Shown piece by piece: positions 11,802-41,892 of a stretch of DNA of 64,000 bases (position 1 is the stretch's first letter; every line of letters begins with the position of its first letter). The notes under the pieces are model-generated. The model did not search any database and was not told where the DNA came from. It saw nothing but the letters and a program-made list of their open reading frames with translations. Source of the stretch: Orbicella franksi (taxonomy: Eukaryota); contig OZ116699.1 of NCBI GenBank assembly GCA_964199315.1, positions 2,046,001 to 2,110,000 on the forward strand, written 5' to 3'. Both the position numbers and the translations under genes were made by a program.

Positions 11802-12659
11802 TTTTTCACTTTTAGCCATTTTAAAAAACATTTTAGCCTTGTTAAATATTTTTTCATTTGCATTAGTGTTCAAGTACAATTCTACTAATAGACAATATGA
11901 CAGACCTAAGATATTTCATGAACTGTAAGTAAGTGTCCTGAGAACAACGGACATTCGCGTTGAATATTCCTCCTCTGCTGTAGAATCTTAGAAATCTAGC
12001 AAAGCACTTGTGAGTTACGACCTCCTTTCCTATATTTGGCATTTGATTTGAAAGGATTCTCTTATCAGTCTGCTTTAGTTCTTATTATAAAGGAGGGCGA
12101 CACGCAAACATAGTTAGAATTGCGTGACGCAAAAGGACTACCGCCGACGCAAAAGCTTTTGGAATGTGCGTGTCGATCAGTCGCAAACAACAATGTCCAT
12201 TTCTCGCGACATAGCTCAAGGCTAAAATCGCGGTTTGGCATGATAAAAACCTAAAACGAACGAATAGTGGCTGGTTTTATGCGTCAATTTAGTGCGGAAC
12301 ATGAAACTGGTCTTATAATGCGATCAAATCGCAATCAAAGGTGCATACAGCCATTTTCTCATACATCCCATGGGCACTACACTTGCTATTTAAACTTGAT
12401 AAGTCCAGCCAGTGTTTTCATAGTTTTTACTGGTTGCAAAAATGAACTGGATATTTCACTAATGTATCAAAGACAAATAAATGTATGTGTAAGTGTTGTT
12501 TCATTACAATCAAAGACGGGCATTACATTGCAATTATTCTTTGATAAAAATGCTAACTCGCTGAACTAATTGCGTGCGATTCATCTTTCACTTTCACAAA
12601 TCTTAAGCTTTTGTGCAGAATGGAACTCAGTAAAGGTAATTATTATTCTATTATCATTC

Positions 12660-13175
12660 TTAATGAAAGTATGCGTGACTGACTTGCTTGGCTCTTAGTC
12701 GATATGATTGATAACACTTTTCATGAAAAGACTGAGCACATTCAGAGCAGAAAAAGTTAGATTCACACTTACATGCAACGCATATTATCGCACATTTAGT
12801 TCCAATATGTTTTCCAAAGATATCTCTATCTACTTTGTTGGCGTAAATCACGGTTTGTTTGCGTGCGTGCGGATATTGTATTTGTGGGCTTGTACCCTAA
12901 GGGTAGTGAATCTCATTTTGTGTACGTACACCAGAGAGAGAAGAGTGTGGGTTATTGAATCTTACTTGTCATCTTGTTCCATTTTCAGAAAAGGTACACA
13001 TTAACGCCATCCCCATTTTTTATTTTGGCTGTAAACAGTGCACATTTACTTTGTTATATATGCTGTTTGCACACTTTCAGGACATTTTCACCATTCCATA
13101 GCACGTCACAACATATATTGTCTTTTTGTCGGAATTTTATTATCATCTTGGCTAACCAAGCATTAAGCAACGAGT
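12660..13175 (-). mobile_element. piggyBac-like transposase relic (C-terminal cysteine-rich domain)
   Basis: CVACKCESNFFCSECAQSFHEKCYQSY fits the CxxC..CxxC..HxxC C-terminal domain of piggyBac/PGBD proteins. An upstream broken frame contains LLNAWL. TIRs not located. Confidence 0.55.
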
Positions 13176-19300: not shown

Positions 19301-22300
19301 TATTGTTCCTTAATTTTTTTCCCCTAAAATAATTCCTGTAAAAGTTGCAATAGCCTACCTACATAATTACACTCTGTAAGCATTGAATTGAAAAGGCTCG
19401 ATTTGTTCAAATGATATGAATATTTGAATTATCAATTTTCAACCACTTTTGTTACTATTTTTAGGAGTTGTGCAAATTTCAAGATGCGATATCTTTTAAC
19501 TTAAAAATGCTTTGAAAATACCTAATGGATTAGAATTGTGTATCATGTGGTAAAGTTTGAGCTCCACTGGATTAAAAACACAAAAGTAATGACTAATATC
19601 CCTTTTTAGCTAACAGCTGAACCAGCTCAATAAATAACTTTCTCACGTTGTAGAACATTTGGAATTTAAAATAGCAGAATCTCCTGGAATACGTTGCTTT
19701 TTTGCTTTTAAAAGAGAATGTATGAGTCCACAATGTAACCAGCTCCCAGTTGGCTTGATAGCTCAGTTGGTAGAGCACTGTACCCGTATCGCAAAAGTCG
19801 TGGGTTCGAATCCCGTTCAGGCCTGATTTTGTATTTTCAGGCTTTAATTTCACAACTGCTTAAGTTGTGTGTATAACTGCGATGATCATGATCAATCATA
19901 TCTTCATTTTTTGCTTTTGTAACTTTTCTTTTTGTTTTCTTTGTTCCTGCTTTCAGACAATTTTATTCCAGGCATTCCCTGGCTCGCTTGGCAGGCCGGG
20001 TACCAAACGAAAGTTCATTACACCCCTTCCTGGTGAGTCACTTGTTCTGCTTAACTGTACTATACTTAAATTTATTTATTTTTTGCCAAGATTTTGCTCT
20101 AGAATGTGATTTCTAACATAAAAAAGATAAATGTAGAGAGGTGAGGTAATAAATTTTGATTTGGATGCTTTTTTTTTTCCAGATTCGCTTGCAACACGCA
20201 TGAATGTTGGTGAAACAATATTCAGAAGAATGGAACAGGTCAACTTTTTTCTTAAGGTTAGTTTCTTAGCTATTCGTGGATAGATAGGCTAAAATGCAAT
20301 ACAATTGCGATAGACTAAAATTCAATAAGACGGAATGAAAATACTAAAATCACTTCATACCAATTCAGGAGTCGATCGGTTTGAGTTTTATAAACTTCAC
20401 CACACAATCCTAAGTCTTAGATTTGGTGGACGAAAGTGGTATGAGCACGAGAACACGCTCTCGAGGGATTTGCGCTCCATCTGTGGCTCTTCCTTTTGGC
20501 ATATTTTCACATCGACAAAAGTTAACAGCCCGTAAATTGTTTAGGATATTATAGCTCAAGGAATAATCTCGGCTGCTGCAGCTGTGTCTTTTGTTAGTAT
20601 TCTAGATCAGAACAATACCATTTAGCGATTCTCTCTTTACAGGAAATTTTGTCTCTTGAGCACAAGGTTTCACAGTCACAACACATCAGGCGGTTTTTGA
20701 CTCCAACGCAAGAGGACTTAGAACCGTTACAAGTGCCAAAGTAAGAGCAAAACACAACACAACTTATCATATTATAAATACGTCTTGGTGATCCACGATA
20801 TGGTATTACCATTTTTTACTAACATAAGAGTAACCAGAAAATATTTCCATAACTAAAACCAGTTGGTTCTCTATCCTGCTCGAAATGGAATTTGGAGTTG
20901 TTGGTTTTTTTTGGAGGGAGGAAAACCGGAGAACCAAAAGAAAAAGCCTCAGAGCAAGGCGAAGAACCAACAGCAAACTCGGCCCGACCGGGCCACATTG
21001 CGCCAACCCTGCTCCCCAGAACAATTTGTTTTACAACATGGCAACTAAATTTACGGAACCATTAGTTCAGGGAGAAGGTCACATAATCCCATAGTTAACT
21101 CGAAATTATCCGGCAATAACTAACGCCGTTTCTTGAGCGTTGAATAAGACAACCTGGGGACTTTCAAACGATAACATCGAAATTTTCGATATCGTTCGAA
21201 ATGTTGTGAAGTCCTGTCTTTGGGTAAATTTCTTCTTGAGACTGACGATTTTAAACTTGAACTACTGATGGCATAATAAGCAACTAACTTAACTTGGTAA
21301 AATGCAGGAAACTAAAGATTAAATTTTCCACTCAGGAGGGTACGATTTAAGAAGAGAAATGGCAGACGAAGAAGTAGTAACTTTACACAGACGGTGAGAA
21401 AGCTGAAGTTTGGAAAGACCAGAGTATGTAAGTAATGGCGAGACGTTGCTGCTAATTAGAATCACATCATACCTTGCAATCGAAGTTCTACATTTTGCTA
21501 CAATGATGTGGGTCAATGCACTTGTAAGTAAATGAACTGTCCCGGTTTTTTATATACTGCGTATTAGCAAAATAGAATTTATATAAAGTCTCTTAAAGTA
21601 TCAAAACTAGCTAATACTCTAGAAACTTTACACCGAGTGACAGATCGATATCCAGAGGTTTTCTTAATTTAGCTTACTTAAATTTATTCTCTTTTATAGT
21701 TGGTAACAAAATAAGTTCACCAATAGTACTAGAACACTTTGTGGTTATGGACGATTACAACAAGCAGGCTAAAAGTGATATTAACTTGAAGAAAGGGCGA
21801 ACTGTTGACGTTATCGAAAAGAGAGAATGCGGTAAGTGTAAAAAGATTAAGTTTGACCTCAAAACGGTTTCCTGTTGCTAAGCAATGCCGATTATTCAGA
21901 AGCAAACTTCGCGAAATGAAGAGGAACACACTTTGAACTGAAACTGCTTTTAGAAAATCGACACCCTCACCCGAGTTAAACGAGTAAACGTTCGTCTGTT
22001 TTTGCGCGTTTAATCCTTTTCCCGCACGAGAGGTGTCTAAGATTCGACCCAGAAACTTCCAAACTGATGACGGTTACAACTATAAACGATAACAACTAAT
22101 TGGGGATGCTATCGAAACATTTCATGACGTGCCTAACTAAAACCATATTACAGGTTGGTGGCTGGTTGAGTGTGACGGGGAAGTGGGCTGGGCTCCAGCT
22201 TTGTATCTTGAGCCCGCTGACGAGATGGCAGATGCTTCTAATGCACAGAAATTCGCTGTTGGTAGAGGTAGGATTGTAAACTTTCCTTTGTTTGAATTAC

Positions 22301-25300
22301 GTATACCAGCCGGTTTTAAGCTATGGTTAACAACTGTTGGGTTTCGACGCCATGATTATCATGTCCATTGCTAATTATTGTTCTGTTATGCAGGTGAGAT
22401 CTATGTCACATCTAAACGTTACGTTGCTGTTGAGGGAGACGAATTGAGCTTTGAAATCGGAGTCAACCTGCAGATTTTGGAAAAAAACTATGATGGATGG
22501 TGGAAAGCCTCGTGAGTATCTGAAGTTATGTGATCTAAAGTAAAGATCGCTATGATATGATATCAAATTGCACACATCGATTGCAAAAATTATCTTTACA
22601 AGTCATATTTGTGTTATCACCCCCAAAATGGTCAGGTTATGCTTAAGATTGATAACATAAGCTTTTAATTTTCTATGCAAATGCGTAGTAAGTGTCTAAA
22701 GTGAATAAAGCGTTGCTGTTGGGATTCACTGAACAGCTTACATGGACTACTCATTCATGTAAGGTTTCATCTTCACACACTCCAACTGTTTTAATGTAGT
22801 ACCAGACTACTTCATCTGGGGCTGATACTGTAAAAGGGTAAATAAGGAAAATCTCGAGTGATGATTACATCATCATGACGACGACGAAAATGATGATGAT
22901 GATGATGATGATGACGATCTTGTTAGCGGTGACCACGGGTCAAAGGTGTAAGTCTCATTCCAACCGTCTATGGTCATAAGGCGGGATACCTCTTAAACTG
23001 CCTTGTTCGCTTTTGTGTCAATTTTCCGCCACGTTTTTGGCTAATTATGATTTTTAATTTTGCGCTCAGATATCTTGGGAAAGAAGGCTTGGTACCTGCT
23101 ATGTACTTGAAAAAGTTGGGAAATGATAGAAGGAAATCATTGGGAGGAAGAAGGAAATCAAGACTTTTTTCTTCAAATGAACTCAGGGGGGAAAGTGACG
23201 ATGACGATGAAGTTATTTCAGGTAAGAAGCGAGGCAGTTACTGCGTTGTTTGGTATTGCTAGAAATGACGCACCTATTATATCATAAAGAGACTTAAGCC
23301 AAAACTATTCTAATCTTGCTACAAAATCGACAAAAATTAAATCGCTCTAAGACCTCAAGTGGGCTAAACTTATGAAAGTACTAATGACTGGTAAAACCTC
23401 GAGTAGAGACGGAGAGGGAATGCTGGACCCCTTAAGATATCAATAAAAAAGATATACACAAAGAGCTGCAGGAACGTAAATTACAGCAAAAACCATTTCA
23501 TCGAAATATTTCACCTACAAAGAAATTTTTTCATCTCTGATCGATCCAATTACTACCTTAATAGGTAGAAATAAGAACTTTCTGTCCTGAACTCCCAAAG
23601 TGGCACCAAAATCTAGGAATTAAACCCCAAGAAAGGCTAAACACGTTCCAGTCCGTTTCATGTTGGCGACCTCCCCAGAGATACAAGAGACCGTCCAAGG
23701 GATTTTGCTGTATTCATGACCTGAGTGTAGATTGTCTGACAGATCAATCACCTAAATCACGAACTGATCTTGATATTATAGTGTTTTTTAAACATATAAT
23801 GACCTTTTGTCTCAAGGTTTGTAACTGCCAGTCGTCATATCCTAATTTAAAATATCTACACCTCGGCGAGCTGTTTCTACCAGCTACCTCCGACAACCAC
23901 TTGTGGAGTTCCCTAGAATTCTATCAACTATTTCTCATTATTAAAGAAAATAAAATGATAATTTACGTTTATTCTTACAGAAATACCTGAAGAAGAGAAA
24001 GACGAAAATAACAAGGTGAGACTGCTGGCTGACTAAATATTTGGATAGGGCCAATAACAAAATTTAAATGTTATAAAATTTAAATGTTAGTTACATGATG
24101 GAAGCTACCTAATTATTTTACTTCAAATGGAAGAAAATCTAAGACACTTTCATGTATGGTGGTTAATCGGAGTGTCCTGGTGTTGTATTCAAAACTAGTA
24201 ACATTTTCAATTTTTTTTAGGATCGGAAGACGTCTATGCCGAAAAAGATTTCACAACAAATGATGTCAGCAATCGGTAGAAAGACCTCCAAAGAGGCGGA
24301 GACTTTCCAAGATGCTGTAGATGGTGGCAGCGACAGTATATCCAAAGGTGACCGTAGAACTATAGACACAATGGTTGAAATGAGTACCGAGTTCTTACAG
24401 TTGCGAAAGAAAGACTCGAATCCAAAGCCGGACCCAGGAATCCCAGAAAAATCCCAAACGCTGCCAGCAACGAGGAGCCCAAGACCCACCCTACAGCGTA
24501 AAGCCATCAGCACACTGGCGGCTTATTCCTTTGGTCTTGGATCATCAGGAGAGGGCGTTAAAGAAGGTTCTAAGGACGACATGTCCCTGGGGATTCCACG
24601 AAGTCGAAGTATGGATTCAGTGCCTACCTCCCATTTGAAGCAGAACGTCAACAAGCAGTTGGATTCAAAATGGAAGCCTGAAACCAAGAATGCGTTATCG
24701 TCATCGCTCAAATGCGTCAATGAGATTCCTGAACCAGATCGAGATAAAGGCGAAAACGATAAAACAGATTCAGGCCCTCAGTCAACAAACGTGCTCAACG
24801 ATCTTTCCCTCACCAACTCAAATTCGACTTCAGAGAACGAGAAGGACTCCGTTAGTTTGAAAAACGAAGGAGATAATGACTTAAATGACATAGACACATG
24901 TGACATAAGATCCGAAAGCACTTCATCTACAGAGCTTACCCAAAGTCCAGAAGTGTGCGAGCAGCCAATTGACCTATCGAGGTATTTTCAGACAATTTCA
25001 CTGGGTGGCGACTCACCCCGACTTCATTCACCAAACAGAGTCCCTCCTGTACCTTCCTTGATACCTCAGAGCTTACATAGTGACCCACCGAGGTCTCCAG
25101 CGCCTAGCAGGATTGCTCCCGTGCCCAGTGGTATCAGTACTTTTCCCAAAAGAGCAGATGCCGCATTCAAACCACAGGGAACCCACAGAAATCCGCAGTC
25201 AATCGACCGAAAAATTATCCGGCAGGCATCGTTTGAAAAAGAAACAGCTGTGGAACTTAATGAAGAAATTCAATATTGGAGCTCAAGTGAAGAATCAGAA

Positions 25301-25380
25301 CCTGAGTTGTTGCAGTTGTCTGTTAACAGCAAAGGTTCGCCCGCTATCGTGGTTGATAACGCAGAGGAGAGTTCTACAGA

Positions 25381-25416
<36 letters not shown>

Positions 25417-26023
25417 GGAAGAGGAAGAAGAAGAAGAGGGAGAGGAAGAAATGGATAAGCATCCCAATGGAACCCAAGATCTCAATCTTAAAAGTAGCAT
25501 CAACTCTACTGAAAGCCTAAAAATTCAGATAGGAACCCCGTCAATTGAAGATGAAAACTCCAATGACATCTATTGCGCATTTGAAGCGTGTGAAATTGAC
25601 AGCGAAATGAACCTATCCAAAGGTGACTACGTGCAAGTTTTAGAGAAAGCATCAACCGGATGGTGGCTGGTAAAGAACGAGGCAGGTCTGAAAGGTTGGG
25701 CCCCGTCTAACTCTCTCTGCCCTGCGCCCCAAGCCCATGGGAATACAGAATGCCCTGTCTTACCAGAGGAAGGAGTATGTGTCATCGAGAAGGAGTGTAA
25801 GCCCCAGATGTCATGCCGTGTTATTGAGGATTACAAGGGTGATCCATACAACCAAGAAATAGATCTCCGCAAGGGAGAGTTTGCGCATATTTTGCACAAG
25901 AGCGAAAGCGGATGGTGGTGTGTACAGGATGAAGACGGGGAGATAGGATGGGCTCCTTCAAACTACCTGGAAGTGTTCGAAGATGAGAATGCTCATAAAT
26001 ACGTAAATCATGTTGGACATTGA
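13356..26023 (+). CDS. SH3PXD2-like: Gene 2: complete PX + 4 SH3 adaptor (Tks4/SH3PXD2B-like architecture; p47phox family), ~948 aa
   Basis: Exons 13356-13427 (MENRTVKEASVEGVQRRTHPKKHF), 14414-14494 (MFCIKVSWSDGTVNLVYRRYSEFLHLQ), 19957-20032, 20183-20256, 20643-20740, 21336-21427, 21700-21831, 22154-22267, 22394-22511, 23070-23221, 23981-24015, 24221-26023. Sum 2847 nt, open to the stop. PX RRYSEF motif. SH3B GEIYVTSKRYVAVEGDELSF resembles p47phox GEPYVAIKAYTAVEGDEVS. Two C-terminal SH3s in the last exon. The 72/81/76-nt first exons match the exon sizes I recall for NCF1/SH3PXD2. Confidence 0.9.
17165..17318. mobile_element. Short MITE-like element
   Basis: Inverted termini AATAGACCGTTTTCGTATTCTC / GAGAATACCAAAATGGTCTATT. 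Confidence 0.7.
18831..19384. repeat. ~90-bp direct repeat pair (about 18831-18921 and 19294-19384) enclosing an inverted-repeat element (about 18970-19233)
   Basis: TGTTCCTTAATTTTTTCCC...TAGCCTACCTACATAATTA..CTCTGTAAGCATT occurs twice. Between the copies, TTAGTATATAGCACACAAGTGAATA pairs with TATTCAGCTTGTGTGGTATATACTAA. Confidence 0.7.
19720..19905 (+). mobile_element. tRNA-derived SINE / pseudo-tRNA (tRNA-like part 19752-19823)
   Basis: GGCTTGA..TCAGGCC acceptor stem, GCTCAGTTGGTAGAGC D-arm (A box) and GGTTCGAATCC T-loop (B box). The anticodon stem is mispaired and a non-tRNA tail follows (TTTCAGGCTTTAATTTCACAACTGC...). Confidence 0.75.
20862..21017 (-). mobile_element. Internally deleted SINE-like repeat
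   Basis: GAGGGAGGAAAACCGGAGAAC...GAGCAAGGCGAAGAACCAACAGCAAACTC...GGGCCACATTGCGCCAACCCTGCTCCC, recalled as a common coral tRNA-derived repeat with most of the tRNA head missing. The family assignment is from memory. Confidence 0.55.
22889..22915. repeat. (GAT)n microsatellite in a gene 2 intron
   Basis: atgatgatgatgatgatgatgatgacg read directly. Confidence 0.85.
25378..25450 (+). repeat. Coding GAA/GAG repeat encoding a ~20-residue poly-Glu tract in gene 2
   Basis: [27 protein letters not shown] in the last exon of gene 2. Confidence 0.9.
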
Positions 26024-29072: not shown

Positions 29073-32000
29073 CTAGTATACCAGAGACTGTAGAAAATTA
29101 GAAGGTCCCCATCCAAGTTCCTCTGATGTTCGTACGAGCCACCAGCCATTCTCGCTTTTCTGGATCACTTCTACTTCATCTCCCTCATTGAAGGTAACTT
29201 CACCATCGTCTTGAGAGATGTAAGTGTGCATTGCTCTGTACAGCCTCGAGTTAACGATATTTTCCTCGTTCTCTATCTCCGAACTGGATTCTCTGGGAGA
29301 CATCTTAGAGGGGGATATAGATCCAGAATCGCGACCTTTTGGAGGTGAACCTGCCAATGGGCTCCTTCTGTTTGTGGAAATCTTTCTTTTTGAAGGAATA
29401 GGGCTGCTTCTGCCCGAACTAGATTTTTTACCTGTCGAGGAGATGCCATTCAAGCTCAACTCCATTTCATTCTTGTAGTGTTCCATAGAGGTGACAGATT
29501 TTGAGCGAGGCATCCCTGGAGAGGGTTGCGACACTGGCATGTTGTCTTCAATATTGTCAAACCGAGGAAGTGTTGCACACTTCTTGATGCCATTAGTAGA
29601 CTGTTCCTCGGCGAAAACATCAGACGACACAAGGGACGAAAGGCTTCCATTTGGAGAGCTTTCATACCCACTACTTGAAATGGAGAATTGACGAGATTGG
29701 GATGGGTTGTCCAATTCTCCTTGACTAAACTCGCTGGATCGGGGCCGCCGGGGCGAGGATCTTGGCGAGGACAAACCTTTGGAGCGGGGTGAAAGCTTCC
29801 TATTCACGGGCGGGGTATACACTGGCGCTGGTACTGAAATTGATCGGCTGTTTTTCGCGACGGGGTTGTCGCTGGTCTTACTTTCGCCATTTTCTCCCTC
29901 TGATATTGCATTAAGTTCAATGGAGTTTCGCTTTGGTTTTTTTCGAATTGTTCTTTGAACCTTTAAATAATAAAAGGAAAGAAAGCCAGATAAGTTTCCA
30001 AAATTATGAAGTGGCACACTAAGACGTTAAGGTCAAATGGACTTGCATGTTGAGACATTATTTCCATCATAATCTTTGGTGGCTCACAATGCTTTTTAGT
30101 CTTACATCAATAGGGTTCATTAATAACTTTCATCGTAGGTTTGTAGGGTTTCCAGGACATTTCAATTCCCCGTATTTAACAGCCTATTCCAGCTAGGAAG
30201 AGCCACTTTGAACTTATGGAAAATAAGGTAACTCTGTATCTTGCCAGCACATGAAGAATTCATTGATTACGATTACATTTCTATTTTCGCAAATAAGGAG
30301 TTCAATACACAAACGTAATGGAACGTTAAGGCACACTGAGAACTTTAACAAATGTAAAAGGGTTAGGACAAGCTCACGAGAACTCACCATGCTTCGCCTT
30401 GTAGGAGGTGTGCGTGAGAACCCATTGCTATCGCCATCTTCAGAATCTGCGAAGAGGAAAACAATCATCAGTTTTCAAATAGATCATCCTTCGTGTAACG
30501 TTCTTGTTACTACTGAGTACTTTAACGATATCCTGCCAAGAAAAATTGCAGCTCTTGGGAGATTAAAATGAACAAATCCTCTACCTCAAAAGAATAGTTG
30601 CAAGCTACTGTGTTACATAGCTGCTATACGAAATTGCAAACAAGGAAATTAAATTTTACATAACGTAAATGGGTGTTGTTTGACTTTGCAAATCAGCTTT
30701 TACTCTATTCAAACCAGCGACCCATTTTTACTGATGAGCAGCCTGCTGATCTCTCAAATCATTCGTCCTATACATATGTACAACAATTCGAGGAAGCTCA
30801 ACCAACATTATGACATGTATTCAGTCAACAGTAGCGTACCTCCATTGAAAGAAACAATATCCAATGTATCCATTTTTCTGGACGTTGAAGTAGAAGACTC
30901 ATCAGAATCAACTCTTTTTAGGAACATGGCAGGAGCCCAGCCTTCATCTCCTTGATACCTGGTGAAATAATGTTAATAATGTATGAGCATGCGCCCTGTC
31001 ATCTAAGAAACTTACCATGAAAATTTGACATAAATATAAAAGTTAAAAAGCGCGTTGGAACCTTTAAAAAAATTCTATTCCGACAGTAATAAGAACAACA
31101 CTAACAAACGACAAGCAAAAACAAAAATAAACAGACAACAACAAACGCGACAAGCAACAACAGCTGCAACAATATAGATGAAAGTTATCTTAAGCTTTGG
31201 ATTCTTTTGTTTACCTTACAAGCCACCATCCATCTAAAGTCTTCTCCACCACTTTAAGCATAACGTCAGCATCAAAAGACAGCTCATCGTCAGCTTGAGC
31301 TTGATAGCTTTTTATGGAGATGTATATCTCCTCTGTTGAATTAAAACAGACAATAAATCATCTCTTCATTCCAGGCAGGTTGGTGGAGGCCTAACTCTGG
31401 ATTTTGATATGGAGCGACACATTTGGGTGAAAGTAGTTGGACAGTATTTCAAGTACGCTACCAAATATTTTCCTTGAGTTGTTTACTCTGTGATTCCAAT
31501 TGGCATTATTAAATGGAAGCTCACCTTTTCCAGGTGCAAAGACTTTTGATGTGGTGACTTCCGATCCGTCGTCTGATGGCTCAAGATGAGAAGCTGGAGC
31601 CCAACCCAACTCTCCTTCCCGGTCAACAAGCCACCAGCCTTACAGAGAAAAAATAGCACGAGAAATTAAAAAATTGAAGGGAATAATCATTTTTACTAGA
31701 CAATCAACAAACTAATCCTGGCGATGCAACTCTGAACACATGGAGGAAATTATTAATTCATCGGAGAATATCAATGACCTTCGACAGACTTCTATACGTA
31801 AAAGGCACTTAGCCCTTCAAATAATTCAAGAAATGAATACTTTACCATAGTCGTTCCTTTCGATGACGTCAACAAGGTCACCAGCTGTCAGGGAAATATC
31901 ATTCTTGTTTTTCTTCTGGTAGTCAGCTGTCACTACGTATTGCTCAAACACTACTGGCCCAGAGATCTGCACATTGTCATCATCGTCATCTACAATAAGA

Positions 32001-34541
32001 ATATGAAGATTTAGTTTCCATTTTACAAAGAAAGAATTTCAAATAAAAAATATTTGAATACGCCAACAAGTCAGATGAAAAATCAGCTTAGTAGACTTAC
32101 TCTCTGCAATCTTCCCGTCCGTCTTTGCAGACCTGAGAGCGAAAAAAGAAAATGGAAAAAATGTCATATAAAAAGAGTATTTGAAGAACCATTTTAAAAC
32201 GACAGTGAAGAATGTGCATAATAATGACAATAAGCCATTTGCAATTTTGCAAAATGAAATCAGATCCTTTTAACAATTCCTTCCTCTTTCATGTAACATA
32301 TATAGGGACATTCAGAATTAAGTCCATGATCATGAAAAGATTTTTGTTTTAGACAATTTTTATTACTCACTCTCCATGAGGATGGACATCACTGGCACGA
32401 GACCTGCAGAAGTCCATAACAACTTTGCTTTTTGAGATGTTGTCAGGTGCATTGATTAGTTCCTGAAAACAAAATAAAAAGACTTAGAGAAACCCATGCC
32501 TTGTTACCTTGACAACTTTCTGTGCTGGCGCCTTTTTTTCTTTAATGCACTTCTCTTTAGCAGTTGGACTAAATCTTGCAACAATAACCTCACATCATTA
32601 TTACTTACGTGGCAAAATTGGTTCATAAACTTCTGGCGCTTGCATTTTCCGTCTTTGAAACAAAACTGACAGTTTTCAGAAAATTTTCGTCCTAGGGAAA
32701 AAAATAAATACAAATTTTGAATAACGACTAGGCAGTGTTGATTGCTCTTGAAAGAGAAAGAACTGATAAAATATGATTGAGTGCTATTTTTTGGAACATT
32801 TTGTTACCTTTGAGTGCAGGGATTTCCTTTCCAATGGCGGATGGAAATTCCTTTCTGAGGTTTTCCTAGAAAACCAAAACAGAGACTTTCAAAAACCTTA
32901 TTTTGTGTAAAGTGCTACAAAAAAACCATCTCCCATGATGACTCTTTACTATGATGATGCACTTGTATTTCAGTCTTTTGTTAAGCTAATGTTGCTTTTT
33001 GAACAAACGAACGAACAAAAAATCAAACAAAAAACATACAAACAAAGACAAACAAACTTTTCAGTTTTAAAATTAACTCATTATCTTCTCAAGTTTTAAG
33101 TTTGTCCTAAATAAATTGTTGTGTTGTGAATGACGCTCTGCTCAAAGCTTAACTAGCAGTAATAACTGTTTTAATGACTGACCCTGGAGAACTGGTACAC
33201 CGACTAAGAGGAATCACCTCTTGACAAATTACAAACGACTTATTTATGACATAAACAGAGCCGAAGGACGGACTTCGAACATAATGATCGATGCCTTACT
33301 TATAAAATAAGTTCTCCCCGCCCTTATTGACGCCATATGCACGTGCAAATCACACGATCATGACACAACAGATTGCCCTTACGGGTGATTGCTAATAAAG
33401 GATGACATTGCAAAATTCGGTACTTGAGATAATGAGACATTTAACCCGCAAACTGGGGAACACATTGAATGCGTTGGGTGGAAACACGCATCGCCGTTAT
33501 ATTGATCTGTTTTCAGCGAACAAAAGACCGCAATCAACACAAGTGGAATATTTGTTTTTAACTTGTAAAGACCTCATATGTTGCAATATCCTTAATGACT
33601 CAGCCTACAATACAATGACGTCAATGTGCGTGACAAAGAAACCGCGCCAATGGAAACTCAATGAGAATTGTTCAATTGGCATTATCTTAATTTTCATGGT
33701 TTTTACCTGAAGGAAAAAAAAATCACTGCATGTCCTGTAGATGATGTTAATATTTCCATCTGACCACACCACTTTGAGAATATAAACCTGAAGAAGAGAG
33801 AATTAAAAGCACATGTATAAGAAATTGGGCAATTTCTGGCATAAAAACGTTACGTTTAGTCAAGTAACATGTTACGAAATTAACTGATAAATACAATAAT
33901 TTGAGATACAATAGAGAACCTTGATAGCTGCTATCACGAACACAAAATATGTACTACACACATACACGGGTTGTGTTTTCTTAAGTAGTTCTCTTCTACT
34001 TAAATTGTTTCATTTAATTGAGGGCATAAACCAAGACAACTATGATCTTACGAATTTAGTATTTTTTAGAGAAAATGTTTGAAAACTGAAATTTTAGTAC
34101 CGCCTGTTTTCGAAGTTTCCTGCCAGCTTTTCTCAATGTTCAAATGTAAATTGAAACTTTTCTATCTTAATCATCAATAACTCGTAAAACATAGCGAGAG
34201 ACAGAACAAAACGACGGGGAATTAAATATATTTCGATATATGAATCAAAACGACTTTTAAATGTCTTCTTTTAAATTATGCTTTATTTTGTTTTATTATT
34301 CGCTAAGTAAGAACTTAATTATCAAGTATTTTGAGAATTTTTTTTGGTCTAAGATGTCACTGGTCATGTAAGATATACATCACATTGCAACGAATCGAAT
34401 CTCAAAAGCCTTTAAGCGATGTCTGAAGTGTTATATTTTGATTAGTCAAGCGAGATCTATCAGTTTACTTACATAGTTTTTATCGGGATTCTTCCTCTTT
34501 TGAATTCCTTCTACCGTTAGGAACTTGGGTCGTCGGTTCAT
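29073..34541 (-). CDS. SH3PXD2-like: Gene 3: PX + 3 SH3 adaptor (p47phox/Tks family), ~618 aa from the ATG at 34541; may instead be the 3' half of a fusion with gene 4
   Basis: Minus-strand exons 34473-34541 (MNRRPKFLTVEGIQKRKNPDKNY), 33707-33787 (VYILKVVWSDGNINIIYRTCSDFFFLQ), 32808-32865, 32609-32691, 32371-32462, 32101-32132, 31846-31989, 31525-31638, 31215-31332, 30840-30958, 30388-30446, 29073-29960. Sum 1857 nt, phases consistent. Tandem SH3 GWW motifs and a C-terminal SH3 (ENGWWLV...GWGPSNFL). Confidence 0.88.
33145..33290 (+). mobile_element. Penelope-like element relic (3' end of the ORF, GIY-YIG side) in a gene 3 intron
   Basis: A broken frame gives ...LTLENWYTD*EESPLD... and YKRLIYDINR, resembling the LESWxTNLEQTPLN...YKRL C-terminus I recall for cnidarian Penelope elements. 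Confidence 0.45.
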
Positions 34542-35701
34542 TTCGGTTGTTATCGTCTGAGCTCCTCTTGCAACGTCTCGATCCACAGTCTGTGAAAAGG
34601 AAAATGGCAGAGTCCGTCTTATATGATGTCGTCTAAGCTTCCTTGATCGATTTAAACCGCAGCCCACTCCATGGAAGGAAATGGCGTCAGTCCAGTTACG
34701 TATATTCCTCTCTCGGTGTTATAATTAAATGCTTACTTATTTTCGTTTTGTTTGTTTTCATGATGGTGGCAACCGTTGCCAATCATAAAACTGGCCGTTC
34801 AAAGTCAGGAAATTTTCAGTTTTGTGCCAGATAACTGGAACAGTTTGACTTAATCCATTTGACCAGTTAAGTGGTTTTCGAAAACATCCTAACAAAACAC
34901 GTTGCTGACCTTTGAAGGAAATAGCATTTTAAAGCATAATTATTACATTAACCTTTAAGAAGATTTTTTAATCGTCTTGGCGTTAGCCTATTTGTTCATT
35001 CACCCAGAAAAACGATTTCTAAATGCATTCCCCCTTTTAGTGAAACAGTCATGAAAGTTTGGGACAAGGTTTCTAGTCTGACATAGAATGTATTTTGGCA
35101 TTTTGGTAATTTTTTTATTTAAAACAACTGTCATATCATATTGATCGGTTGCGGTCACGATTATTTTTTGATGACATACCTAAATATATAAATTCTCTAA
35201 TATCAGCTAGAAGAATCATTTGTAGTAAAATATATAAGGTGCTTGTGTCTAAGTCGAGCTTCTACAGATGAGAACAATTCGGTGATTAGAATCTGTAGCA
35301 TTCATTCAAAAGATTCGAACACTTCGGCAATCCCTAGTCTTGTGCCTTTGTAATTATTTTAATAATGAATAACACAAAAGAATGCATGCTCTCGTACAAT
35401 ATTAAGCTCGGTATCTTTCAAAGGACATTAAGAATCAGCCCCCCTTGGAAAGACAATAGCCTTTCCGGTGACTAAGCATATGTTTTTATCCTTTTTGTTG
35501 GAATTAACCCACCACACACACTCACGTGTCTTGCTTTTCACCAATAGATGAAAGAGCTTTTGAAGTTGGTTTTGCAAACAATAACAATGAAATTAAAATA
35601 AGAAAAAAGAAAAAATTCGATCCCGTGTCGTAAAGGAAACAATTGTTACGAAGTGCTTAAACCTTCTCGATCTGGCTGTTCTAGATTCAATGTTAGCAAT
35701 C

Positions 35702-38700
35702 CTACATGTACCAAATAAGCAATTTTAAGTCAAATCTGTCACTAATGAAAATAATAGCTACCTTCTCTGTTCTTGGAGGGACGAATTTTCTTTCCTTCAC
35801 GCCTTCCTCTTTGGGACAGGTTTCCAAATTTTCTTTGATTTGGCAAGACTCTTCCTGGCCGTCTGAAACTTGCGGCTCATTTGGCGTCTCTGGAGATGGG
35901 GACCTGGATCTGGCAGGTGCTAGAAAAGCACTTGGTGCCCACCCCTCACAGAAATCATTCTTGACGTACCACCAACCGCTAGACTCCTTCTGTAGCACTT
36001 CAACCTCCTCGCCTTCCTCCACCGACACCTCACCGCTTTCTTCGGCAAAGAATGACGAAATAACGACATACTTAGCCTTATTGGGGGTCATTCTCGCCAG
36101 GCTGTTTCTTGCACTAGATTGAGTTGAGATCTTCCTGGAGCGAGTCTCCTCCACCTCGGAGTACTCAGAGTCGATGGCTGAACTCTCCGTCTGTGCTGAA
36201 AGACTCTCATCTCCATCACTCTCAGACTGTTGTTGGCTTAACTCTTGTTCAGGCTTCTCTTCGTTCAACATCTTTTCGGTTTGCTTGCCCAAGTCAGCGA
36301 TACCGACAGCAACACTGAATGGTCTCCTCCTTAAACCTGGCCTCTGAGGTGCCACTTTTTTGTCTAAGTCGTCATCAGTGACTGAAGTCGCTCTCGGCTT
36401 ACCAGGAATCATTGGGATGTCTTTACTTGGCCGTCGTTCATTCAACCTGTTCAGCTTGTGGTAAAGATGATCTCTTGCTTCCTCGCTGAGGACGTGCAGG
36501 TCCTCTGGAATCCAGGCCGAACTATACTTTGGCTTTCGCTTTACCAATGGACTTTGTTGAGGTATATCTCTGAGCGGATCTCGACCTAAAGAAAAGAGTT
36601 TTATTCGGAATCAAAATGATTTTAGATTTTTCCTTTGCACAAGAAAGTTTAATCCTTGATTTGCTTTTAAATCTGTCAAAAATCTAGTTTGATGAGTTCT
36701 TGTTTAGAGAGTTACTAGCAGTGCAATGCTGCTTACTTTTATTCTCCTTCAAGGTAGAAAAATGTATGTTTTGTCTTTTGTTATTATTGTTTGAAGTATT
36801 TTTTCCCTTACCACTTAACATTTCGGCCACTTTAGTGACTTTTTTCAGTTTTTCTTCCTCGGAGGACCTGCAGGGAAAGAATTCAGGTCAGCGCCTTATA
36901 GTTTAGATGAATTTAAAAACTTGGCGGCACTTAATAGTCTTACCTTTCAATGGTTCCATTTTGTCCATTCAAAGCACCGAAAAAATCCATTACAATTTCA
37001 GACTTTCGCACCATAGCCGGAAGAGTTAACAGTTCCTGTAATTAAAAAAAAATCCAAATTAGTATTTAGTTTGTGGAATTTGCATTGTGAGCTGTAAGAT
37101 AACAGCTTTTGCCACCTGAATACTAAGATTGTTTAAGTCTCAAGAAAATACCTTGATAAACTCATCCATTCTTGCCATCTTTTTCAAATCGCTGTCTTTA
37201 AAGAGAATGCGGGATAGTGCCGAGTTGTTTTCTGCAAAGTAAACTCTTCTGATCAGTTAATGAATTCAAAGCTCACCAGGTAGGTCTTGACATTACCTAA
37301 GATTGTCATGCAGAGCATGTTACATCGATAAAAAGTCACTCAAACTTCAATCATAGCTGTACACTTCCAGCTTTCTCGATTGGAGACTGACGAATTCCTG
37401 TCATAATTTGACCATTAAAATGTAAGTAATTGACTATTATATGAATAATATATAAATTATGTAGTCTTTCATACTGTTCGTTGCTGAAAAGAACTGAATT
37501 TTTTTGAGAACATCCTTGTCAGACATCCACCTAATTAATGAGGATTTTAGAACCTCGATCAGGGACACTAAACATCGATAAACAATGAGTTATAGAGGGC
37601 GAAGTCGTTTTGTATGATCAAGTGTTCTGAAATAACGTACCTGGCAAGCTGGAAATAAGAGTTCTTGAAGTCTTTCTGGAATAGCCACCCTTTTGCTTGA
37701 GTAACTCGTAAATCTTAACCTAAGGTTGATAGAAAATATGAGTTTCTGTTCTTTTCTTTAACTTACGGGAGCCATGTCACGATTTTAGCATCTTGAAAAT
37801 CTTAGCCTACATGTAAATCTACTTTGCCTAACGTTTGTCTTTTGCAGTCACTCTTAAACCTCTCTATCCTTGACCATCTTCAGTGCTCGTTCGTTTTTGT
37901 TTATTCAACCTCCCCCCTTTTGTCGTTTTTCTTCCTTAGCAAGCTACCATTTCGACAGTTTTTTTTAATTCGAAGATGTCTCCAAAATGACTCAAACTAT
38001 TCCGTCATTCTAAACTGGGTAAGACTATCGAGACATGGTCATTATTACAGGGGACCGAGGAAGTAACATCAAGTTGGTTATAAATATCATACGATGTTTT
38101 TCCTGTAGAATCTTTTTTCAGCTATAAATGTTTATCCTTTCTCCTTTATTGCAATGCACGTCATCCAATATAGTGAGCTGAAACGGGCTGACACTAACAC
38201 CGTATGCTATAACTAGTGTCTCGATCTATCCGCTTGACGCAGACAGGGCGGAGCTTTCTTATCAACCTGCCACGCCATATTAAATCTTGTCTTCCTCTGT
38301 TTCTTGGAACATTTTACGGAATGTTTATTTAAGCAGAAACAACGATGATCACAGAAGTAGCTCCAAGGCCAAAATTTAAAATATTTAGTTCCATGCAAAG
38401 GAATTTGTTTGCCCTTAATCGTTGTAACAATGAGCCCAGCTTTGCTGTGGGCTATTTTGTCAACAAGACAATTGAACAGGAACAAACTTCTAAATTAATC
38501 TCATCGGAAAACTTACTTGTAAGTCAACAAATTCCTCATATTTCTTTCGAAGTACAGACTTGCTGCCGTCGCCATAAACAACGGTAATCTTGTAGGTCTG
38601 TAAGATTTAACGAAAGTTAAAAGTTAATTAATAGTTTACTTGCTTTCAAGAATAGCCTTCACTGTATTTGTTATGTTACCGTTTCAGTTCATCAACGAAG

Positions 38701-39472
38701 CAGTGCTAAGACAGTCCTATTGTTACCAAATCCACGTGTAACTCCGCAGGTGTGCATGTGATATGCGGAACAAATGATGGTCAAAAGTCAATCCTTAACT
38801 CGCACCCATTCTACACTGACTATGAAATTGGCATCGCAGCTCAAAAGAAAATCCACCATTCGAAAACTTTGAAAACGTGCTAGAGACTACGAGATGTCAG
38901 TAATTCTATGACAATTTTCCAAATTTCAGCTCATCGGCACCCTTCAAATTCAAACGCTGACATATTTACATACTTTAAGTATTTCAGAAATATTTTTCTT
39001 TCCTCATCCGGTTTTCCTTGCGTATAACAATATCGCTTGCAGGCATTTCAGAAATGCTCGATGGATTTGGCCACAAACTGGTCTATAAATATAATCGACT
39101 TCCTCTCGCCGGCACTCTTTGGAGTGTACGAAATTAAGAATGTTTTCCAGTGGATTAAAACCAAGGCTAGACTCTTACTTTTATAACACCACAACCAAAG
39201 TTGTTTTTCTTTAGTGTTAAATGTTTTTGCATGACTTTCCTTTGGTGTTGTGTTTGATTTGTAATCCCCCATTATAAACATCCAATACGGCACGCCAGCA
39301 ACAGAAACACTTTGGAAACAGTTGCATCAATTTATTGCCGTATTCTCACACACAGTGATCTGAAGCGAGGTAGTAAATAAAGAAAATATTGACAACTAAC
39401 CTCAGGGTCTTTTTCATCTTTTGGAGTCACTGTTCCACTTACAGAGGCACGCAGAACTGATTTTCCCTCCAT
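35702..39472 (-). CDS. Gene 4: divergent PX + single SH3 protein (~445 aa if it reads to the stop at 35702; otherwise spliced at 35762 into gene 3)
   Basis: Minus-strand exons 39401-39472 (MEGKSVLRASVSGTVTPKDEKDPE, 72 nt), 38517-38597 (TYKITVVYGDGSKSVLRKKYEEFVDLQ, 81 nt), 37641-37713, 37152-37231, 36944-37035 (ELLTLPAMVRKSEIVMDFF, 92 nt), 36812-36867, 35762(or 35702)-36585 containing an SH3 (YVVISSFFAEESGEVSVEEGEEVEVLQKESSGWWYV...GWAPSAFL). Intron positions and phases match the PX exons of genes 2 and 3. Confidence 0.8.
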
Positions 39473-41892
39473 GGTGCCAAATCGCAAATGATATGAAGCA
39501 GGCTTCGTTACCTTATAAAGCTTCTGTACTAACGTGGGAGTTCAGCTTACGTCAATTGAAATAATTATATCTGTTTCTGCTTGACTAATGTTTTGCATAA
39601 TTAGCTATAATTCCGTGATTGAAGACTGTTAATATCAACAGGTGATCGCAATATCAGGCAAGAGAACTGAACTGTGAAGACTATATGTGCAAATAAATCA
39701 CGATAGATGAAATAACTAGCAAACAGAATCACTACGACTACGTAAAATACTAAATAACATTGTCCAACTTGAAGTTGTTTTGTGAAATAGTCCTTGAATG
39801 CACTCGCATATGACTTATTTGAAATTTTCTTAAGCCGCGCGACGGAACGTTCTTTCAAAATTAGATATATTAAAAAAAAATTAATAAGATTTTGCTTCTT
39901 AGCTTAAACTGTATGTAGAATGTCTTAGGTGTTCTTTATATCAAAAATCTGTCGCAGAGTGGAGTATTACGAAAGTAAGTGAAGTGCTTTGTGAAATGTT
40001 GTTCCTGTTACGTGGTAAGTTCGGTGAAGCAGACATCCTGTTCTTTTGTGACGCGTAAAAAACAAAAAACACGTTAGGTGTGTATCCAAACGGACACGCT
40101 TTCTTAAATGTTTCAATGAGCATTTGTCACTCTCACTACAATTTGTTTGCGTCAAACTAATGCCCGTTTACCACGTAAGAAAATTTGGTACTGTATACAA
40201 TCCATAACAAATATACCATAGTTACTTTTTCGCAGAGGTTTGAACCCTAGAACATACACATTCCTTCAGCGACCTCCATTTAGCGGTTATTAACATAGCC
40301 CTTATTCATTTCGCCATCTCAAGCTTAACGAAATCGTTAAATCGAGTTTTACGATCTTCACATGACCTTTTGGTCGTCGAAGAGAGTTGCGAAGGAAAAG
40401 TTAACTTGAAATTCCTTTCTAACTGAAACTTTTTGGAATGATTTCTTGACTAATTTGAAAATGTTTGAGCGAATTTCTACCATAATTAAGAGTTAAATCA
40501 AGTCAGTGCAAAAGTAATTATTCAGATATTAAAACAGGTCAAGTCGCAAACGGTCACGCCAGTATAATAGATAGATAAGCTTTCAGAAAAAATTCACCGG
40601 CTGATTCAATTTCAAAATATACAAATTTTTCATTTACTTTAAGATACGTCACTAGCTAACCAGCTTCAACGTATGGTGCTGTAGTTGACGGTGAAGAGGA
40701 AAATTGAGCCCGAAGCGAAGCAGACACCATAATGAACAACTGAAGCAATATCGGGTTGTAAATGAGACACTGCGGTAAAGTTATCAAACGCAAACTAATC
40801 CGTTATTTTTCGCTGAAGTTTGGTTTTGCGTGAATCATGTGAGAAGGAATCACTATGCATTTGAAAAGATTCATTTTAATTTAGCACGTTGTTTGGCCAG
40901 TATGGAACAAGCTGTACAGACAAAGACGTTTTATGGTTGATTTTCTGTTAGAACAATGAACAATATCAGTAGAATTTGTTGACGCTCTCGAGGTCGACAG
41001 TTTGATTAGCGTTACAATCAAAAAAGTCATATTTAGCTAGCACCCAACTGGGATTATTTCCTGAATAGATTTGAGAGGACTTAAATATGAGAAATGGGCT
41101 GTCAGTAATTATTAATAACAATTTTTTTTAGGAAAACAAGCATGACTATAAGCACGCGTAACGTTATTAAGGATCAATAATTTATTAAAAATAATTTTTT
41201 GTTTCTGCCCAAGAAAAACTTTTCTTCGGGTATCTAAACATTGTGTATCAGTTAAAGAGTGTTTTGGAAACCTCAATGCAAGCAGAAGGTTTTCTCCCAC
41301 TTGATACTCAATGCAAAAACATACCCGGTTATGATAATTTGAGTGACGTCATGTAAATACTTCCCAAAAACGTGACTAAAAGTTTTCCACGTGTGCCTTC
41401 ATCTTCATTTAGCTGATTTAGCTAACGGCAGCTTTGCAAAAACGTTTTCAGCTATTAATATCACAGAAATGGCCACATCATAAAACAAACAATGATGCTT
41501 TGTCATAATTGCATCCCACCACAGTGAACAATAATTTAGTTTCTGGCATTTTTTAAAATTTTCTACCTCTATTTTTCCCATAAAGGAAATTCCCATAAAC
41601 TGTAATACCGGCAGTTCAAATTTGTGTGCGCCTCTGCAGCCAATCATTTATATTGTTTTAAGAAACATTAATACATTTGTCTTCATTTTCTTCTTCATTT
41701 TCAAAACACTAAAAAAGTAAACAATCAAACAAATAAACAAACATGACTATGGAACTTCACGCCTCAGTTTTCATCAGATTATTTGTTTATATCGTTTTTG
41801 GGCGATCTGTTAAAAGCGAATACCGCTTTATCGCTTTGTTACCCAACAAAGTGAAGTGAGATTCATTACGAATCGATCACTCTCCAGTTGTA

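Follow-up and report, generated by a model that had tools for sequence, protein, structure and literature searches.

Introduction

The defining feature of p47phox/NOXO1/Tks family organizers is a single PX domain at the N-terminus, which directs a group of SH3 domains to membranes. p47phox (NCF1) and NOXO1 are NADPH oxidase organizers, and Tks5 and Tks4 (SH3PXD2A and SH3PXD2B) serve as scaffolds of invadopodia and podosomes as well as NOX organizers. A cnidarian p47phox-like protein has been described that carries a PX, a bis-SH3, a polybasic region and extra SH3 domains, and stands nearer to SH3PXD2 (Kawahara and Lambeth, PMC2121648). Two non-identical PX domains occur naturally in one chain in the PX-PX proteins of Trypanosoma (kinetoplastid subfamily B; PMC10380299); these come from an unrelated lineage, lack SH3 domains and have adjacent PX domains, whereas those of the coral protein described here are separated by an SH3 module.

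Here we analyse a window of 64,000 nucleotides from Orbicella franksi (contig OZ116699.1, positions 2,046,001 to 2,110,000; all coordinates below are those of the window). Its preliminary description listed two neighbouring genes of the family, 'gene 4' (PX-SH3) and 'gene 3' (PX-SH3-SH3-SH3), possibly joined by read-through. We conclude with high confidence that they are one gene: the intron that separates the SH3 exon of 'gene 4' from the first PX exon of 'gene 3' is removed constitutively, and the predicted product is a p47phox/NOXO1/Tks (SH3PXD2) family protein of 1062 aa that carries an additional PX-SH3 module at its N-terminus. A literature search turned up no account of a family member with two PX domains; two-PX protein models are already present in RefSeq and UniProt.

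Results

Gene model

The exon model comprises 19 exons on the minus strand (39472-29073), with a CDS of 3189 nt including the stop and a translation of 1062 aa (Table 1). A joined ORF of about 1060 aa thus exists as originally proposed, its length being 3189 nt instead of the 3183 nt first given. GT/AG borders are found at 18 of the 18 introns. The protein reads PX1, linker, SH3, 16-residue joint, PX2, SH3, SH3, polybasic Ser/Pro-rich linker, SH3; matches to Pfam and to a Tks-family profile bear out the PX-SH3-PX-SH3-SH3-SH3 order announced earlier. Joints of exons 1-9 were taken from RNA-seq; exons 10-19 were modelled and then confirmed by collinear alignment to the ortholog P0329, an ORF from another coral's transcript contig that crosses the exon 7-8 joint too. 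Residues 275-1058 are 65% identical to P0329, and none of the inferred exon boundaries coincides with an indel.

The start codon was assigned to Met1 because this residue is conserved in orthologs; in-frame stops precede it in the transcripts L018 and L020. At the 5' end reads stop at 39466/39467, with one past 39479, which may be an edge effect, as the segment used for read alignment reached just 7 nt beyond the ATG. An alignment of the window with the 5'UTR of a transcript from another coral gave nothing usable for the transcription start. Linker 1 in exon 7 holds the conserved motifs RRPSK and RPGLRRRPFS, and this exon has more than 60 ortholog clusters; when protein representatives were searched with it, single-exon ORF fragments and canonical Tks proteins were returned, and no full-length ortholog.

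Table 1. Features of the two-PX organizer gene (positions in the window)
Feature	Position	Strand	Basis
Whole coding span, PX1-SH3-PX2-SH3-SH3-SH3	29073..39472	-	exon model, RNA-seq, P0329 alignment
Exon 1, 72 nt, ATG 39472, PX1 start	39401..39472	-	RNA-seq joint 38597^39401
Exon 2, 81 nt, PX1 strands beta2-beta3, motif LRKKYEEF	38517..38597	-	RNA-seq joints, alignments
Exon 3, 79 nt, PX1	37641..37719	-	RNA-seq joints
Exon 4, 80 nt, PX1	37152..37231	-	RNA-seq joints
Exon 5, 92 nt, PX1 end	36944..37035	-	RNA-seq joints
Exon 6, 56 nt	36812..36867	-	RNA-seq joints
Exon 7, 824 nt: linker 1, SH3-1 (36076-35912), acidic tail	35762..36585	-	Pfam SH3_1 36.7 bits, RNA-seq joints
Intron 7, 1172 nt, GT..AG, former 'intergenic' gap between gene 4 and gene 3	34590..35761	-	junction reads, depth
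Exon 8, 117 nt: 16-codon joint linker (34589-34542), conserved Met445 (34541), PX2 start	34473..34589	-	RNA-seq joints
Exon 9, 81 nt, PX2, motif IIYRTCSDFFFLQ	33707..33787	-	RNA-seq joint 33785^34471, loose end 33702->32860
Exons 10-12 (32865-32808, 32691-32609, 32462-32371): remaining PX2 including Cys-rich stretch	32371..32865	-	canonical GT/AG, phase continuity, P0329
Exons 13-18 (32132-32101, 31989-31846, 31638-31525, 31332-31215, 30958-30840, 30446-30388): tandem SH3-2 and SH3-3	30388..32132	-	Pfam SH3 matches on exon ORFs, P0329
Exon 19, 888 nt: polybasic RTIRKKPKR, Ser/Pro-rich linker 2, SH3-4 (29246-29082), stop 29075-29073	29073..29960	-	Pfam SH3_1 37.1 bits

Joint between exons 7 and 8

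Sequence inspection placed the donor and the acceptor where the preliminary description had them. The phase-0 donor ends exon 7 in GAG AAG (last base 35762), with GTAGCT opening the intron. The exon begins at 34589, directly after the acceptor CCATTTTCCTTTTCACAG; the ATG at 34541 lies 48 nt further on, and the frame leading to it is open, reading TVDRDVARGAQTITTE-MNRRPK. Junction reads over 35762^34589, suggested as a check on in-frame splicing, were found in both poly(A) RNA-seq runs: 84 reads with 54 start places in run X23 and 31 in run X24. One Logan contig from another study (X1) also spans the joint. Flanking joints carry 45-119 reads in X23 and 18-46 in X24, so that joint 7-8 is used as often as its neighbours. 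Depth over 34680-35679 is 0-0.5 in the poly(A) runs, against 60-100 in exons, and these runs show no clusters of read starts or ends near 35700 or 34600. In X1, shallow coverage extends over all of intron 7, a pattern that unspliced RNA or DNA would give. The raw-read basis is two poly(A) runs from one study plus this contig set; a further run, X21, gave no aligned reads and is not counted.

Equal joint usage and near-zero intron depth imply that there is neither a 'gene 4' terminal exon between 35761 and 34590, in agreement with the earlier reading, nor a separate 'gene 3' 5' exon. The joint is constitutive in poly(A) RNA of the Orbicella franksi samples examined.

Conservation across corals and paralogs

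The same in-frame joint recurs in two further paralogs about 70-100 kb away in the same genome, and in three other genome assemblies. Six genomic loci keep the phase-0 donor and acceptor together with an open linker of 13-17 codons, and among them the linker before Met445 differs in length by whole codons only. A search for PX-SH3-PX-SH3 proteins in other cnidarians, also proposed at the outset, found them in Stylophora, Pocillopora and Porites; with Orbicella, these genera provide full-length annotated or transcript-derived proteins of 1047-1076 aa. Models that cross the joint include the NCBI Orbicella protein P0167, the Logan transcript ORFs P0356, P0400 and P0405, and models from Porites lobata and P. 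evermanni. Four full-length proteins also cross it, from Stylophora pistillata (XP_022796983.1, PFX21586.1), Pocillopora verrucosa (XP_058973776.1) and P. meandrina (CAH3139586.1). These four share the whole architecture, with two family-profile PX matches each and 73-91% domain identity, but are automatic annotations only and are named as ordinary Tks-like proteins.

Compared with the window protein, PX1 is 73-79% identical, SH3-1 78-82% and PX2 83-91%, but the joint linker just 27-47%. Across six full-length proteins (Orbicella-, Stylophora- and Pocillopora-type plus two further corals), 77 of 121 positions in PX1 and 34 of 55 in SH3-1 are invariant. Three other genomic loci, among them a Porites-type one, retain the PX1 exons as well (52-93% identity), and neither the three paralogs nor the other loci examined contain stops or frameshifts. 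In copy A, a single tblastn alignment made exons 7-8 seem intronless; this was rejected, as inspection revealed a short intron with a stop. As judged from these sequence comparisons, the fusion is old and not a recent read-through, because it is common to three paralogs and to both major stony-coral clades.

Identity and predicted fold of the two PX domains

A profile was built from 166 PX domains of the Tks family. In the window protein it gives PX1 (aa 5-125) 55.3 bits and PX2 (aa 452-568) 91.0 bits, and in each of the six full-length proteins it finds two PX domains. Pfam PX (PF00787; gathering score 21.6 bits) was scored on orthologs, not on the spliced window protein. It gives 29.4 (P0178), 23.1 (P0356) and 22.5 (P0344) bits for PX1, two of the three being marginal, and 27.3-30.5 bits for PX2, all above the threshold. 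An AlphaFold model of the ortholog PX1 (P0356, residues 1-140; mean pLDDT 67) places strands at 6-15, 25-32 and 37-43, followed by helices; confidence is moderate, and the underlying alignment contained canonical PX sequences. The top Foldseek matches of this model in the PDB are all PX domains: Bem1p, p47phox (1o7k, TM 0.67-0.77), p40phox and NOXO1. With three predicted beta-strands, a helical subdomain and PX domains as nearest solved structures, PX1 probably adopts a PX fold.

PX1 and PX2 are 26% identical. Their modules share exon sizes and phases, and each matches the Tks-family profile, which makes an origin by duplication of a Tks/p47phox-type unit plausible. The tandem duplication proposed earlier is in keeping with this exon structure, but the identity is low, and in a PX-only tree the two domains sit on long, fully supported stems from an unresolved backbone and are not resolved as sisters. 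The PX1 and PX2 subtrees have matching topologies.

Canonical PtdIns3P-binding PX domains have an Arg with Tyr/Phe at the beta3/alpha1 junction, a Lys in the PxxPxK loop and an Arg in alpha2 (PMC6449406). In our alignment, Tks PX domains read RRY...PFLPGK...KR. PX1 instead has K(K/T)Y, no loop Lys, and a Lys at the alpha2 Arg position. PX2 has R(T/Q)C, with loss of the 3-phosphate Arg and the aromatic residue, an Arg at the loop Lys position, and the KR kept. From the aligned residues, the PtdIns3P set thus appears incomplete in both domains. PX2 additionally contains a conserved cysteine cluster, CxxCx5C...CH with two more Cys.

Relation to Tks and p47phox

As in p47phox, a PX is directly followed by tandem SH3 domains (PX2 452-568, SH3-2 598-652, SH3-3 671-725). 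A polybasic stretch comes next, RTIRKKPKR, which on sequence resembles the autoinhibitory region. The PX1 model likewise superposes best on the p47phox PX (the 1o7k match above). The coral protein differs from p47phox and NOXO1 by its two PX domains, its C-terminal SH3 and a much longer chain.

Against Tks of Nematostella, Actinia, the sponge Sycon and a sea urchin, single BLAST alignments span PX2 and the tandem SH3 pair, with a length of about 270-330 residues, 36-42% identity and scores of up to 231 bits. The coral protein resembles Tks also in having further SH3 domains separated by long Ser/Pro-rich linkers, and in NCBI the coral orthologs go under 'SH3 and PX domain-containing protein 2A-like'. 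It differs in the extra PX-SH3 module in front, in having four SH3 domains against 5-6 in the anemone and vertebrate Tks compared, and in the altered RRY, PxxPxK and Arg residues of both PX domains. In all 166 canonical relatives of the profile the PX lies within the first ~130 residues, and the canonical relatives aligned by BLAST show a match in that region alone; instead of that single N-terminal PX, the window protein has two.

A canonical single-PX Tks gene is found elsewhere in the genome (G000:C2:12476749-12486803), with 59-89% identity per exon to Nematostella Tks (P0277). P0277 is only about 36% identical to the PX2-SH3-SH3 core of the window protein. Since the canonical locus is far closer to Nematostella Tks, the window gene is not the Tks4/Tks5 ortholog. 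A profile query headed by hagfish Tks5 was dominated by vertebrate Tks5; beyond these it returned only the canonical anemone and sponge Tks, which have a single PX.

Discussion

One could still regard the locus as two independent genes, PX-SH3 and PX-SH3-SH3-SH3, whose separate mRNAs are the main products and which are occasionally conjoined by read-through. If the 35762 donor is not used, the frame closes 20 codons later, where a PX1-SH3 protein could terminate; a conserved methionine, Met445 (MNRR), stands at the start of PX2; and among Logan contigs of other corals, L018 runs from exon 7 into the intron and L019 starts in the intron before exon 8. Conjoined genes, however, have parent transcripts with their own ends and a minor chimera, and here the poly(A) reads reveal no such ends, no intron depth and a joint as frequent as its neighbours. 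The linker before Met445 would also have to stay open, in frame and altered by whole codons in six loci, and independent full-length annotations and transcript ORFs exist in four genera. For the samples examined the two-gene reading is largely refuted, and we consider it extremely improbable; the read-through fusion first suggested, taken as coexisting with two separate genes, is given up in favour of an ancient fusion. Much the same slight chance is left to the idea that the PX1-SH3 half is a decaying remnant, translated as a functionless leader of the only part that matters, PX2-SH3-SH3-SH3. PX1 is indeed further than PX2 from the canonical Tks PX (55 vs 91 bits), has Lys for canonical Arg residues, lacks the PPK-loop Lys and is marginal in Pfam. 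Against decay speak the invariant positions of PX1 and SH3-1, between flanking linkers that vary freely, the retention of PX1 exons in three other loci, the intact frames of paralogs and other loci, and the PX fold predicted for PX1.

Unlikely, in our estimate, is a variant in which the gene is single but PX2-SH3-SH3-SH3 (~618 aa) and/or PX1-SH3 (~448 aa) also arise, through an internal promoter within intron 7 or through its retention, beside the full-length protein in some tissues, stages or species. The Stylophora-type Logan contigs P0346, P0347 and P0352 hold ORFs of 616-631 aa, L019 has 117 nt of intron directly upstream of exon 8, and L018 extends into intron 7 for about 100 nt, closing with a stop. 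The exon 8-9 joint is also somewhat more frequent than joint 7-8 (99 vs 84 and 46 vs 31 reads), but technical effects make the counts along the gene vary between 45 and 119, and depth in bin 34680-34879 is at most 0.1. Splice sites are points at which Logan contigs break or branch, and such contigs can contain pre-mRNA; the whole-intron coverage in X1 has the low level expected from unspliced RNA or DNA. The shorter separate products once envisaged are hinted at only by intron sequence beside exons 7 and 8 in contigs of other corals, which may be pre-mRNA.

Taking the locus as one gene with a constitutive joint, its product may act, by analogy with Tks and p47phox, as a membrane-recruited SH3 scaffold. 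PX2 and the tandem SH3 pair would form the ancestral organizer core, and PX1-SH3 would bring in a further contact, of another kind, with a membrane or ligand, working through avidity, coincidence detection or autoinhibition. Because both PX domains lack part of the PtdIns3P residue set, lipid binding by each alone is expected to be non-canonical and weak, and linking two would then be useful. An artificial tandem PX-PX of SNX25 reaches the yeast plasma membrane, and the single domain does not (PMC6449406). We also put forward, as a long shot that is very probably wrong, a bolder scheme. In it the protein would be an innovation of stony corals, without a classical PtdIns3P reader in either PX; the PX2 cysteine cluster would have replaced part of the lipid pocket, and PX1-SH3 would provide the second membrane or protein contact. 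The whole would be a redox- or metal-sensitive two-point membrane switch coupling NOX-derived oxidants to scaffold localisation, e.g. at phagosomes or symbiosomes.

Stony corals keep, and have multiplied, an organizer with two different PX domains in one chain. It offers a natural system for the cooperation of two weak or non-canonical lipid modules, and an uncharacterised, lineage-specific component added to coral NOX/ROS and cell-adhesion signalling.

In annotation, both halves should be treated as one gene. In several public models of the coral two-PX family, assembly gaps have divided the gene (Orbicella) or tandem copies have been run together (Porites). The Orbicella faveolata locus L001, which contains gaps and a duplicated block, was rejected as the ortholog, being 97% identical to paralog B and not to the window gene. 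A copy in this draft is divided at assembly gaps into partial models of 479 and 800 aa, and one Porites evermanni model merges two tandem copies into 1769 aa.

One transcription unit across the SH3-to-PX2 joint

The preliminary description had proposed that gene 4 splices in frame into gene 3, and its donor, acceptor and open frame are accurate on the window sequence. Base 35762 is the last of the large SH3 exon (minus strand), at the donor GAG AAG|GTAGCT; if this donor is ignored, a stop is reached 20 codons further on. The acceptor CCATTTTCCTTTTCACAG leads into an exon starting at 34589, and the frame is open over the 48 nt down to the ATG at 34541. The window contains 0 N bases.

RNA was examined over 33480-39479 in two poly(A) raw-read runs from one study (X23 and X24) and one contig set from another (X1). 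The joint 34589^35762, a GT..AG junction on the minus strand skipping 1172 nt, is crossed by 84 X23 reads with 54 distinct starts, by 31 X24 reads and by one X1 contig; the remaining joints of the gene are covered by 45-119 and 18-46 reads in the two runs, respectively. As the paralogs are only ~56% identical to the window gene on the exon-7 side, that side is copy-specific and cross-mapping cannot account for the joint. Poly(A) depth is 0-0.5 over 34680-35679 versus 60-100 in exons, and no clusters of read starts or read ends were reported near 35700 or 34600. The in-frame splice is thus borne out by the junction reads, and the division into two separate genes is contradicted by the empty intron and the lack of internal ends: the samples show a single transcription unit, in which gene 4 has no 3' end and gene 3 no 5' end of its own.

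No shorter products were seen in poly(A) RNA of O. franksi. Elsewhere, one Logan contig from another coral (L018) continues from exon 7 for ~100 nt into the intron and then stops, and several from other corals (L019) start with 117 nt of intron sequence immediately before exon 8 and give 616-631-aa ORFs. These contigs may be pre-mRNA or minor isoforms from an internal start; we consider real additional isoforms anywhere improbable.

For the full-length transcript, exons 1-9 come directly from RNA-seq joints. A loose end from exon 9 to exon 10 (78 + 37 reads) lands at 32860, and exons 10-19 were placed by canonical splice sites and phase continuity. The resulting model has 19 exons, GT/AG at 18/18 introns and a CDS of 3189 nt, encoding 1062 aa. 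Its inferred exons are validated by alignment with P0329, a 792-aa ORF on a 5088-nt transcript contig from another coral, which is 65% identical to aa 275-1058, shows no indel where an exon boundary was inferred, and itself spans the SH3-to-PX2 joint. At the other end, Met1 is backed by conservation and by in-frame stops that precede it in another coral's transcripts. Many reads end at 39466/39467, 5-6 nt within the ORF, and just one extends beyond 39479, the edge of the examined stretch; this pile-up probably reflects an edge effect together with a nearby variant. Clustered differences at 36343-36413, 35981, 36074-36090 and 33710-33716 occur at ~40-70% frequency in both RNA runs; seen in RNA only, they look like allelic SNPs, with a haplotype block in exon 7, and not like editing.

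Domain organization

The predicted protein consists of PX1, a linker, SH3-1, the 16-residue joint, PX2, SH3-2, SH3-3, a polybasic Ser/Pro-rich linker and SH3-4. Pfam recognizes the SH3 domains in exon ORFs, and searching the window protein with a profile made from 166 PX domains of the Tks family gives two PX hits, at aa 5-125 (55.3 bits) and aa 452-568 (91.0 bits). Pfam PX scores, taken on orthologs and not on the spliced window protein, are 29.4, 23.1 and 22.5 bits for PX1 and 27.3-30.5 bits for PX2, at a threshold of 21.6. The AlphaFold model of an ortholog's PX1 has a mean pLDDT of 67 and the beta-beta-beta-helices order of a PX domain; its PDB matches are PX structures only, p47phox among them (TM 0.67-0.77).

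Linker 1 carries the strongly conserved basic motifs ERRPSK(D/E)IP and (S/Q)(P/R)RPGL(R/K)RRPFSVAVG, both kept in most exon-7 orthologs. They fit the basophilic kinase consensus (RRxS, RxRxxS) and may serve as a candidate SH3 ligand as well.

Location of the clustered genes and of sequence motifs in the window gene
Feature	Position	Strand	Remarks
Copy A	G000:C2:1975822-1987477	+	complete double-PX paralog; loci L013+L015
Copy B	G000:C2:1996293-2006279	+	complete double-PX paralog; loci L014+L016
Window gene	G000:C2 about 2075073-2085472	-	double-PX gene
Gene 1	window 208-10716	+	SH3 exons; SH3-rich relative; start probably before the window
Gene 2	window 13362-25972	+	single canonical PX (VYRRYSEF, RRY intact), then SH3 exons
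Linker-1 basic motifs	window 36460-36428; 36361-36320	-	exon 7
PX2 cysteines	window 32691-32609; also 33787-33707 and 32462-32371	-	exon 11 (first interval)

Conservation of the fusion

Three double-PX genes lie within a stretch of ~110 kb on contig C2. Copies A and B, 70-100 kb from the window gene, have an identical exon order with the exon 7-exon 8 joint in frame, intron 7 of copy A being only ~125 nt long. The splice sites agree between these three copies and loci L002-L004 of three further genome assemblies: the SH3 exon finishes at a phase-0 donor after ...EK or ...QK, and the following exon has a phase-0 acceptor, an open linker of 13-17 codons and then a conserved Met-(Asn/Asp/Ser)-Arg-Arg; linker lengths among these six loci differ by whole codons.

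The joint is also spanned by proteins of Orbicella faveolata (P0167, from NCBI, 97% identical to copy B), Stylophora pistillata (XP_022796983.1, 1074 aa; PFX21586.1, 1047 aa), Pocillopora meandrina (1076 aa), P. verrucosa (1072 aa), Porites lobata (partial) and Porites evermanni (two tandem copies merged, 1769 aa), and by three full-length Logan transcript ORFs of 1054-1076 aa. Of these genera, Porites is placed in the "complex" clade of stony corals and the other three in the "robust" clade; the presence of the joint in both indicates that the fusion is older than their split. Six full-length proteins are 73-79% identical to the window protein over PX1, 78-82% over SH3-1, 83-91% over PX2 and 27-47% over the joint linker, and the PX1 and PX2 subtrees have an identical branching order. 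Both results fit a single protein kept by purifying selection, its interdomain linker being free to vary.

Relatives and origin

In its PX2-SH3-SH3 core the window protein matches Tks (SH3PXD2) proteins of Nematostella, Actinia, the sponge Sycon and a sea urchin at 36-42% identity; each of those has one N-terminal PX, and the window protein has two. The Tks ortholog of this genome is another gene: ~10 Mb along the same contig is a canonical Tks gene whose exons are 59-89% identical to Nematostella. Kawahara and Lambeth (PMC2121648) reported a p47phox-like protein of cnidarians that combines PX, bis-SH3, a polybasic region and further SH3 domains and is nearer to SH3PXD2 than to vertebrate p47phox; that description fits the second half of the window protein. 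The window gene, genes 1 and 2 and copies A and B make up a local group of five or more genes of p47phox/Tks type.

The proposed origin by duplication and fusion is upheld in part. The exons of the first and second PX modules have similar sizes (72/69 coding nt, 81/81, 79/58, 80/83, 92/92 and 56/32 nt) and equal phases, the Tks-family profile matches both PX domains, and SH3-1 and the linker before it resemble the C-terminal SH3-4 and its own linker most (60 bits versus 46-47 for the other SH3 domains). From these likenesses, a reasonable though not proven history is that a Tks/p47-type unit was duplicated, the upstream copy lost the tandem SH3 pair, and fusion followed. It is limited by the 26% identity between PX1 and PX2 and by a tree in which they are not resolved as sisters.

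Lipid pocket and proposed mechanism

Four side chains are required for a PX domain to bind PtdIns3P in the canonical way, and domains without any one of them fail to bind PtdIns3P (Chandra et al., PMC6449406). Where Tks has RRY, PFLPGK and KR, PX1 shows K(K/T)Y, lacks the loop Lys and carries Lys at the alpha2 Arg position; in PX2 the first motif is R(T/Q)C, Arg takes the place of the loop Lys, and KR is retained. Given these altered residues, membrane binding of each PX is expected to be non-canonical and individually weak. An artificial PX-PX tandem of SNX25 reaches the plasma membrane, and the single domain does not (PMC6449406). In the mechanism we prefer, an SH3 scaffold would be recruited to the membrane at two points: its ancestral organizer core would consist of PX2, the tandem SH3 pair and the polybasic region, and PX1-SH3 would contribute avidity, another specificity or a contact for autoinhibition.

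PX2 also contains cysteines absent from canonical Tks PX domains, in ENCQFCFKDG(K/T)CKRQKFMNQFCH, YR(T/Q)C and DFC(R/K), at the usual place of the lipid-binding loop and helix alpha2. Apart from the His, which is Phe in one ortholog (P0356, FCF), the cluster is intact across six full-length orthologs and five genomic loci. The cysteines could be a candidate metal or redox site.

Existing records and annotation of relatives

Full-length models are already in RefSeq and UniProt under ordinary Tks-like names. In our full-text searches, two-PX proteins were described from Trypanosoma only, with passing mention of a few other organisms (PMC10380299); no description of a p47phox/Tks-family member with two PX domains, or of these coral proteins, was found.

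The O. faveolata locus L001 (GCA_002042975.1, MZGG01000845.1:829599-852687) contains N gaps and a block, 10425-13086, duplicated at 16780-19441, and because of these the NCBI annotation is broken up into partial models (479 and 800 aa). The first exons of L001 are 97-100% identical to the window gene and the remainder matches copy B, which suggests a chimeric scaffold. The Porites evermanni model CAH3015480.1 merges two tandem double-PX genes, and Stylophora PFX21586.1 lacks the 27-residue exon 9 of PX2 that is present in the NCBI model.
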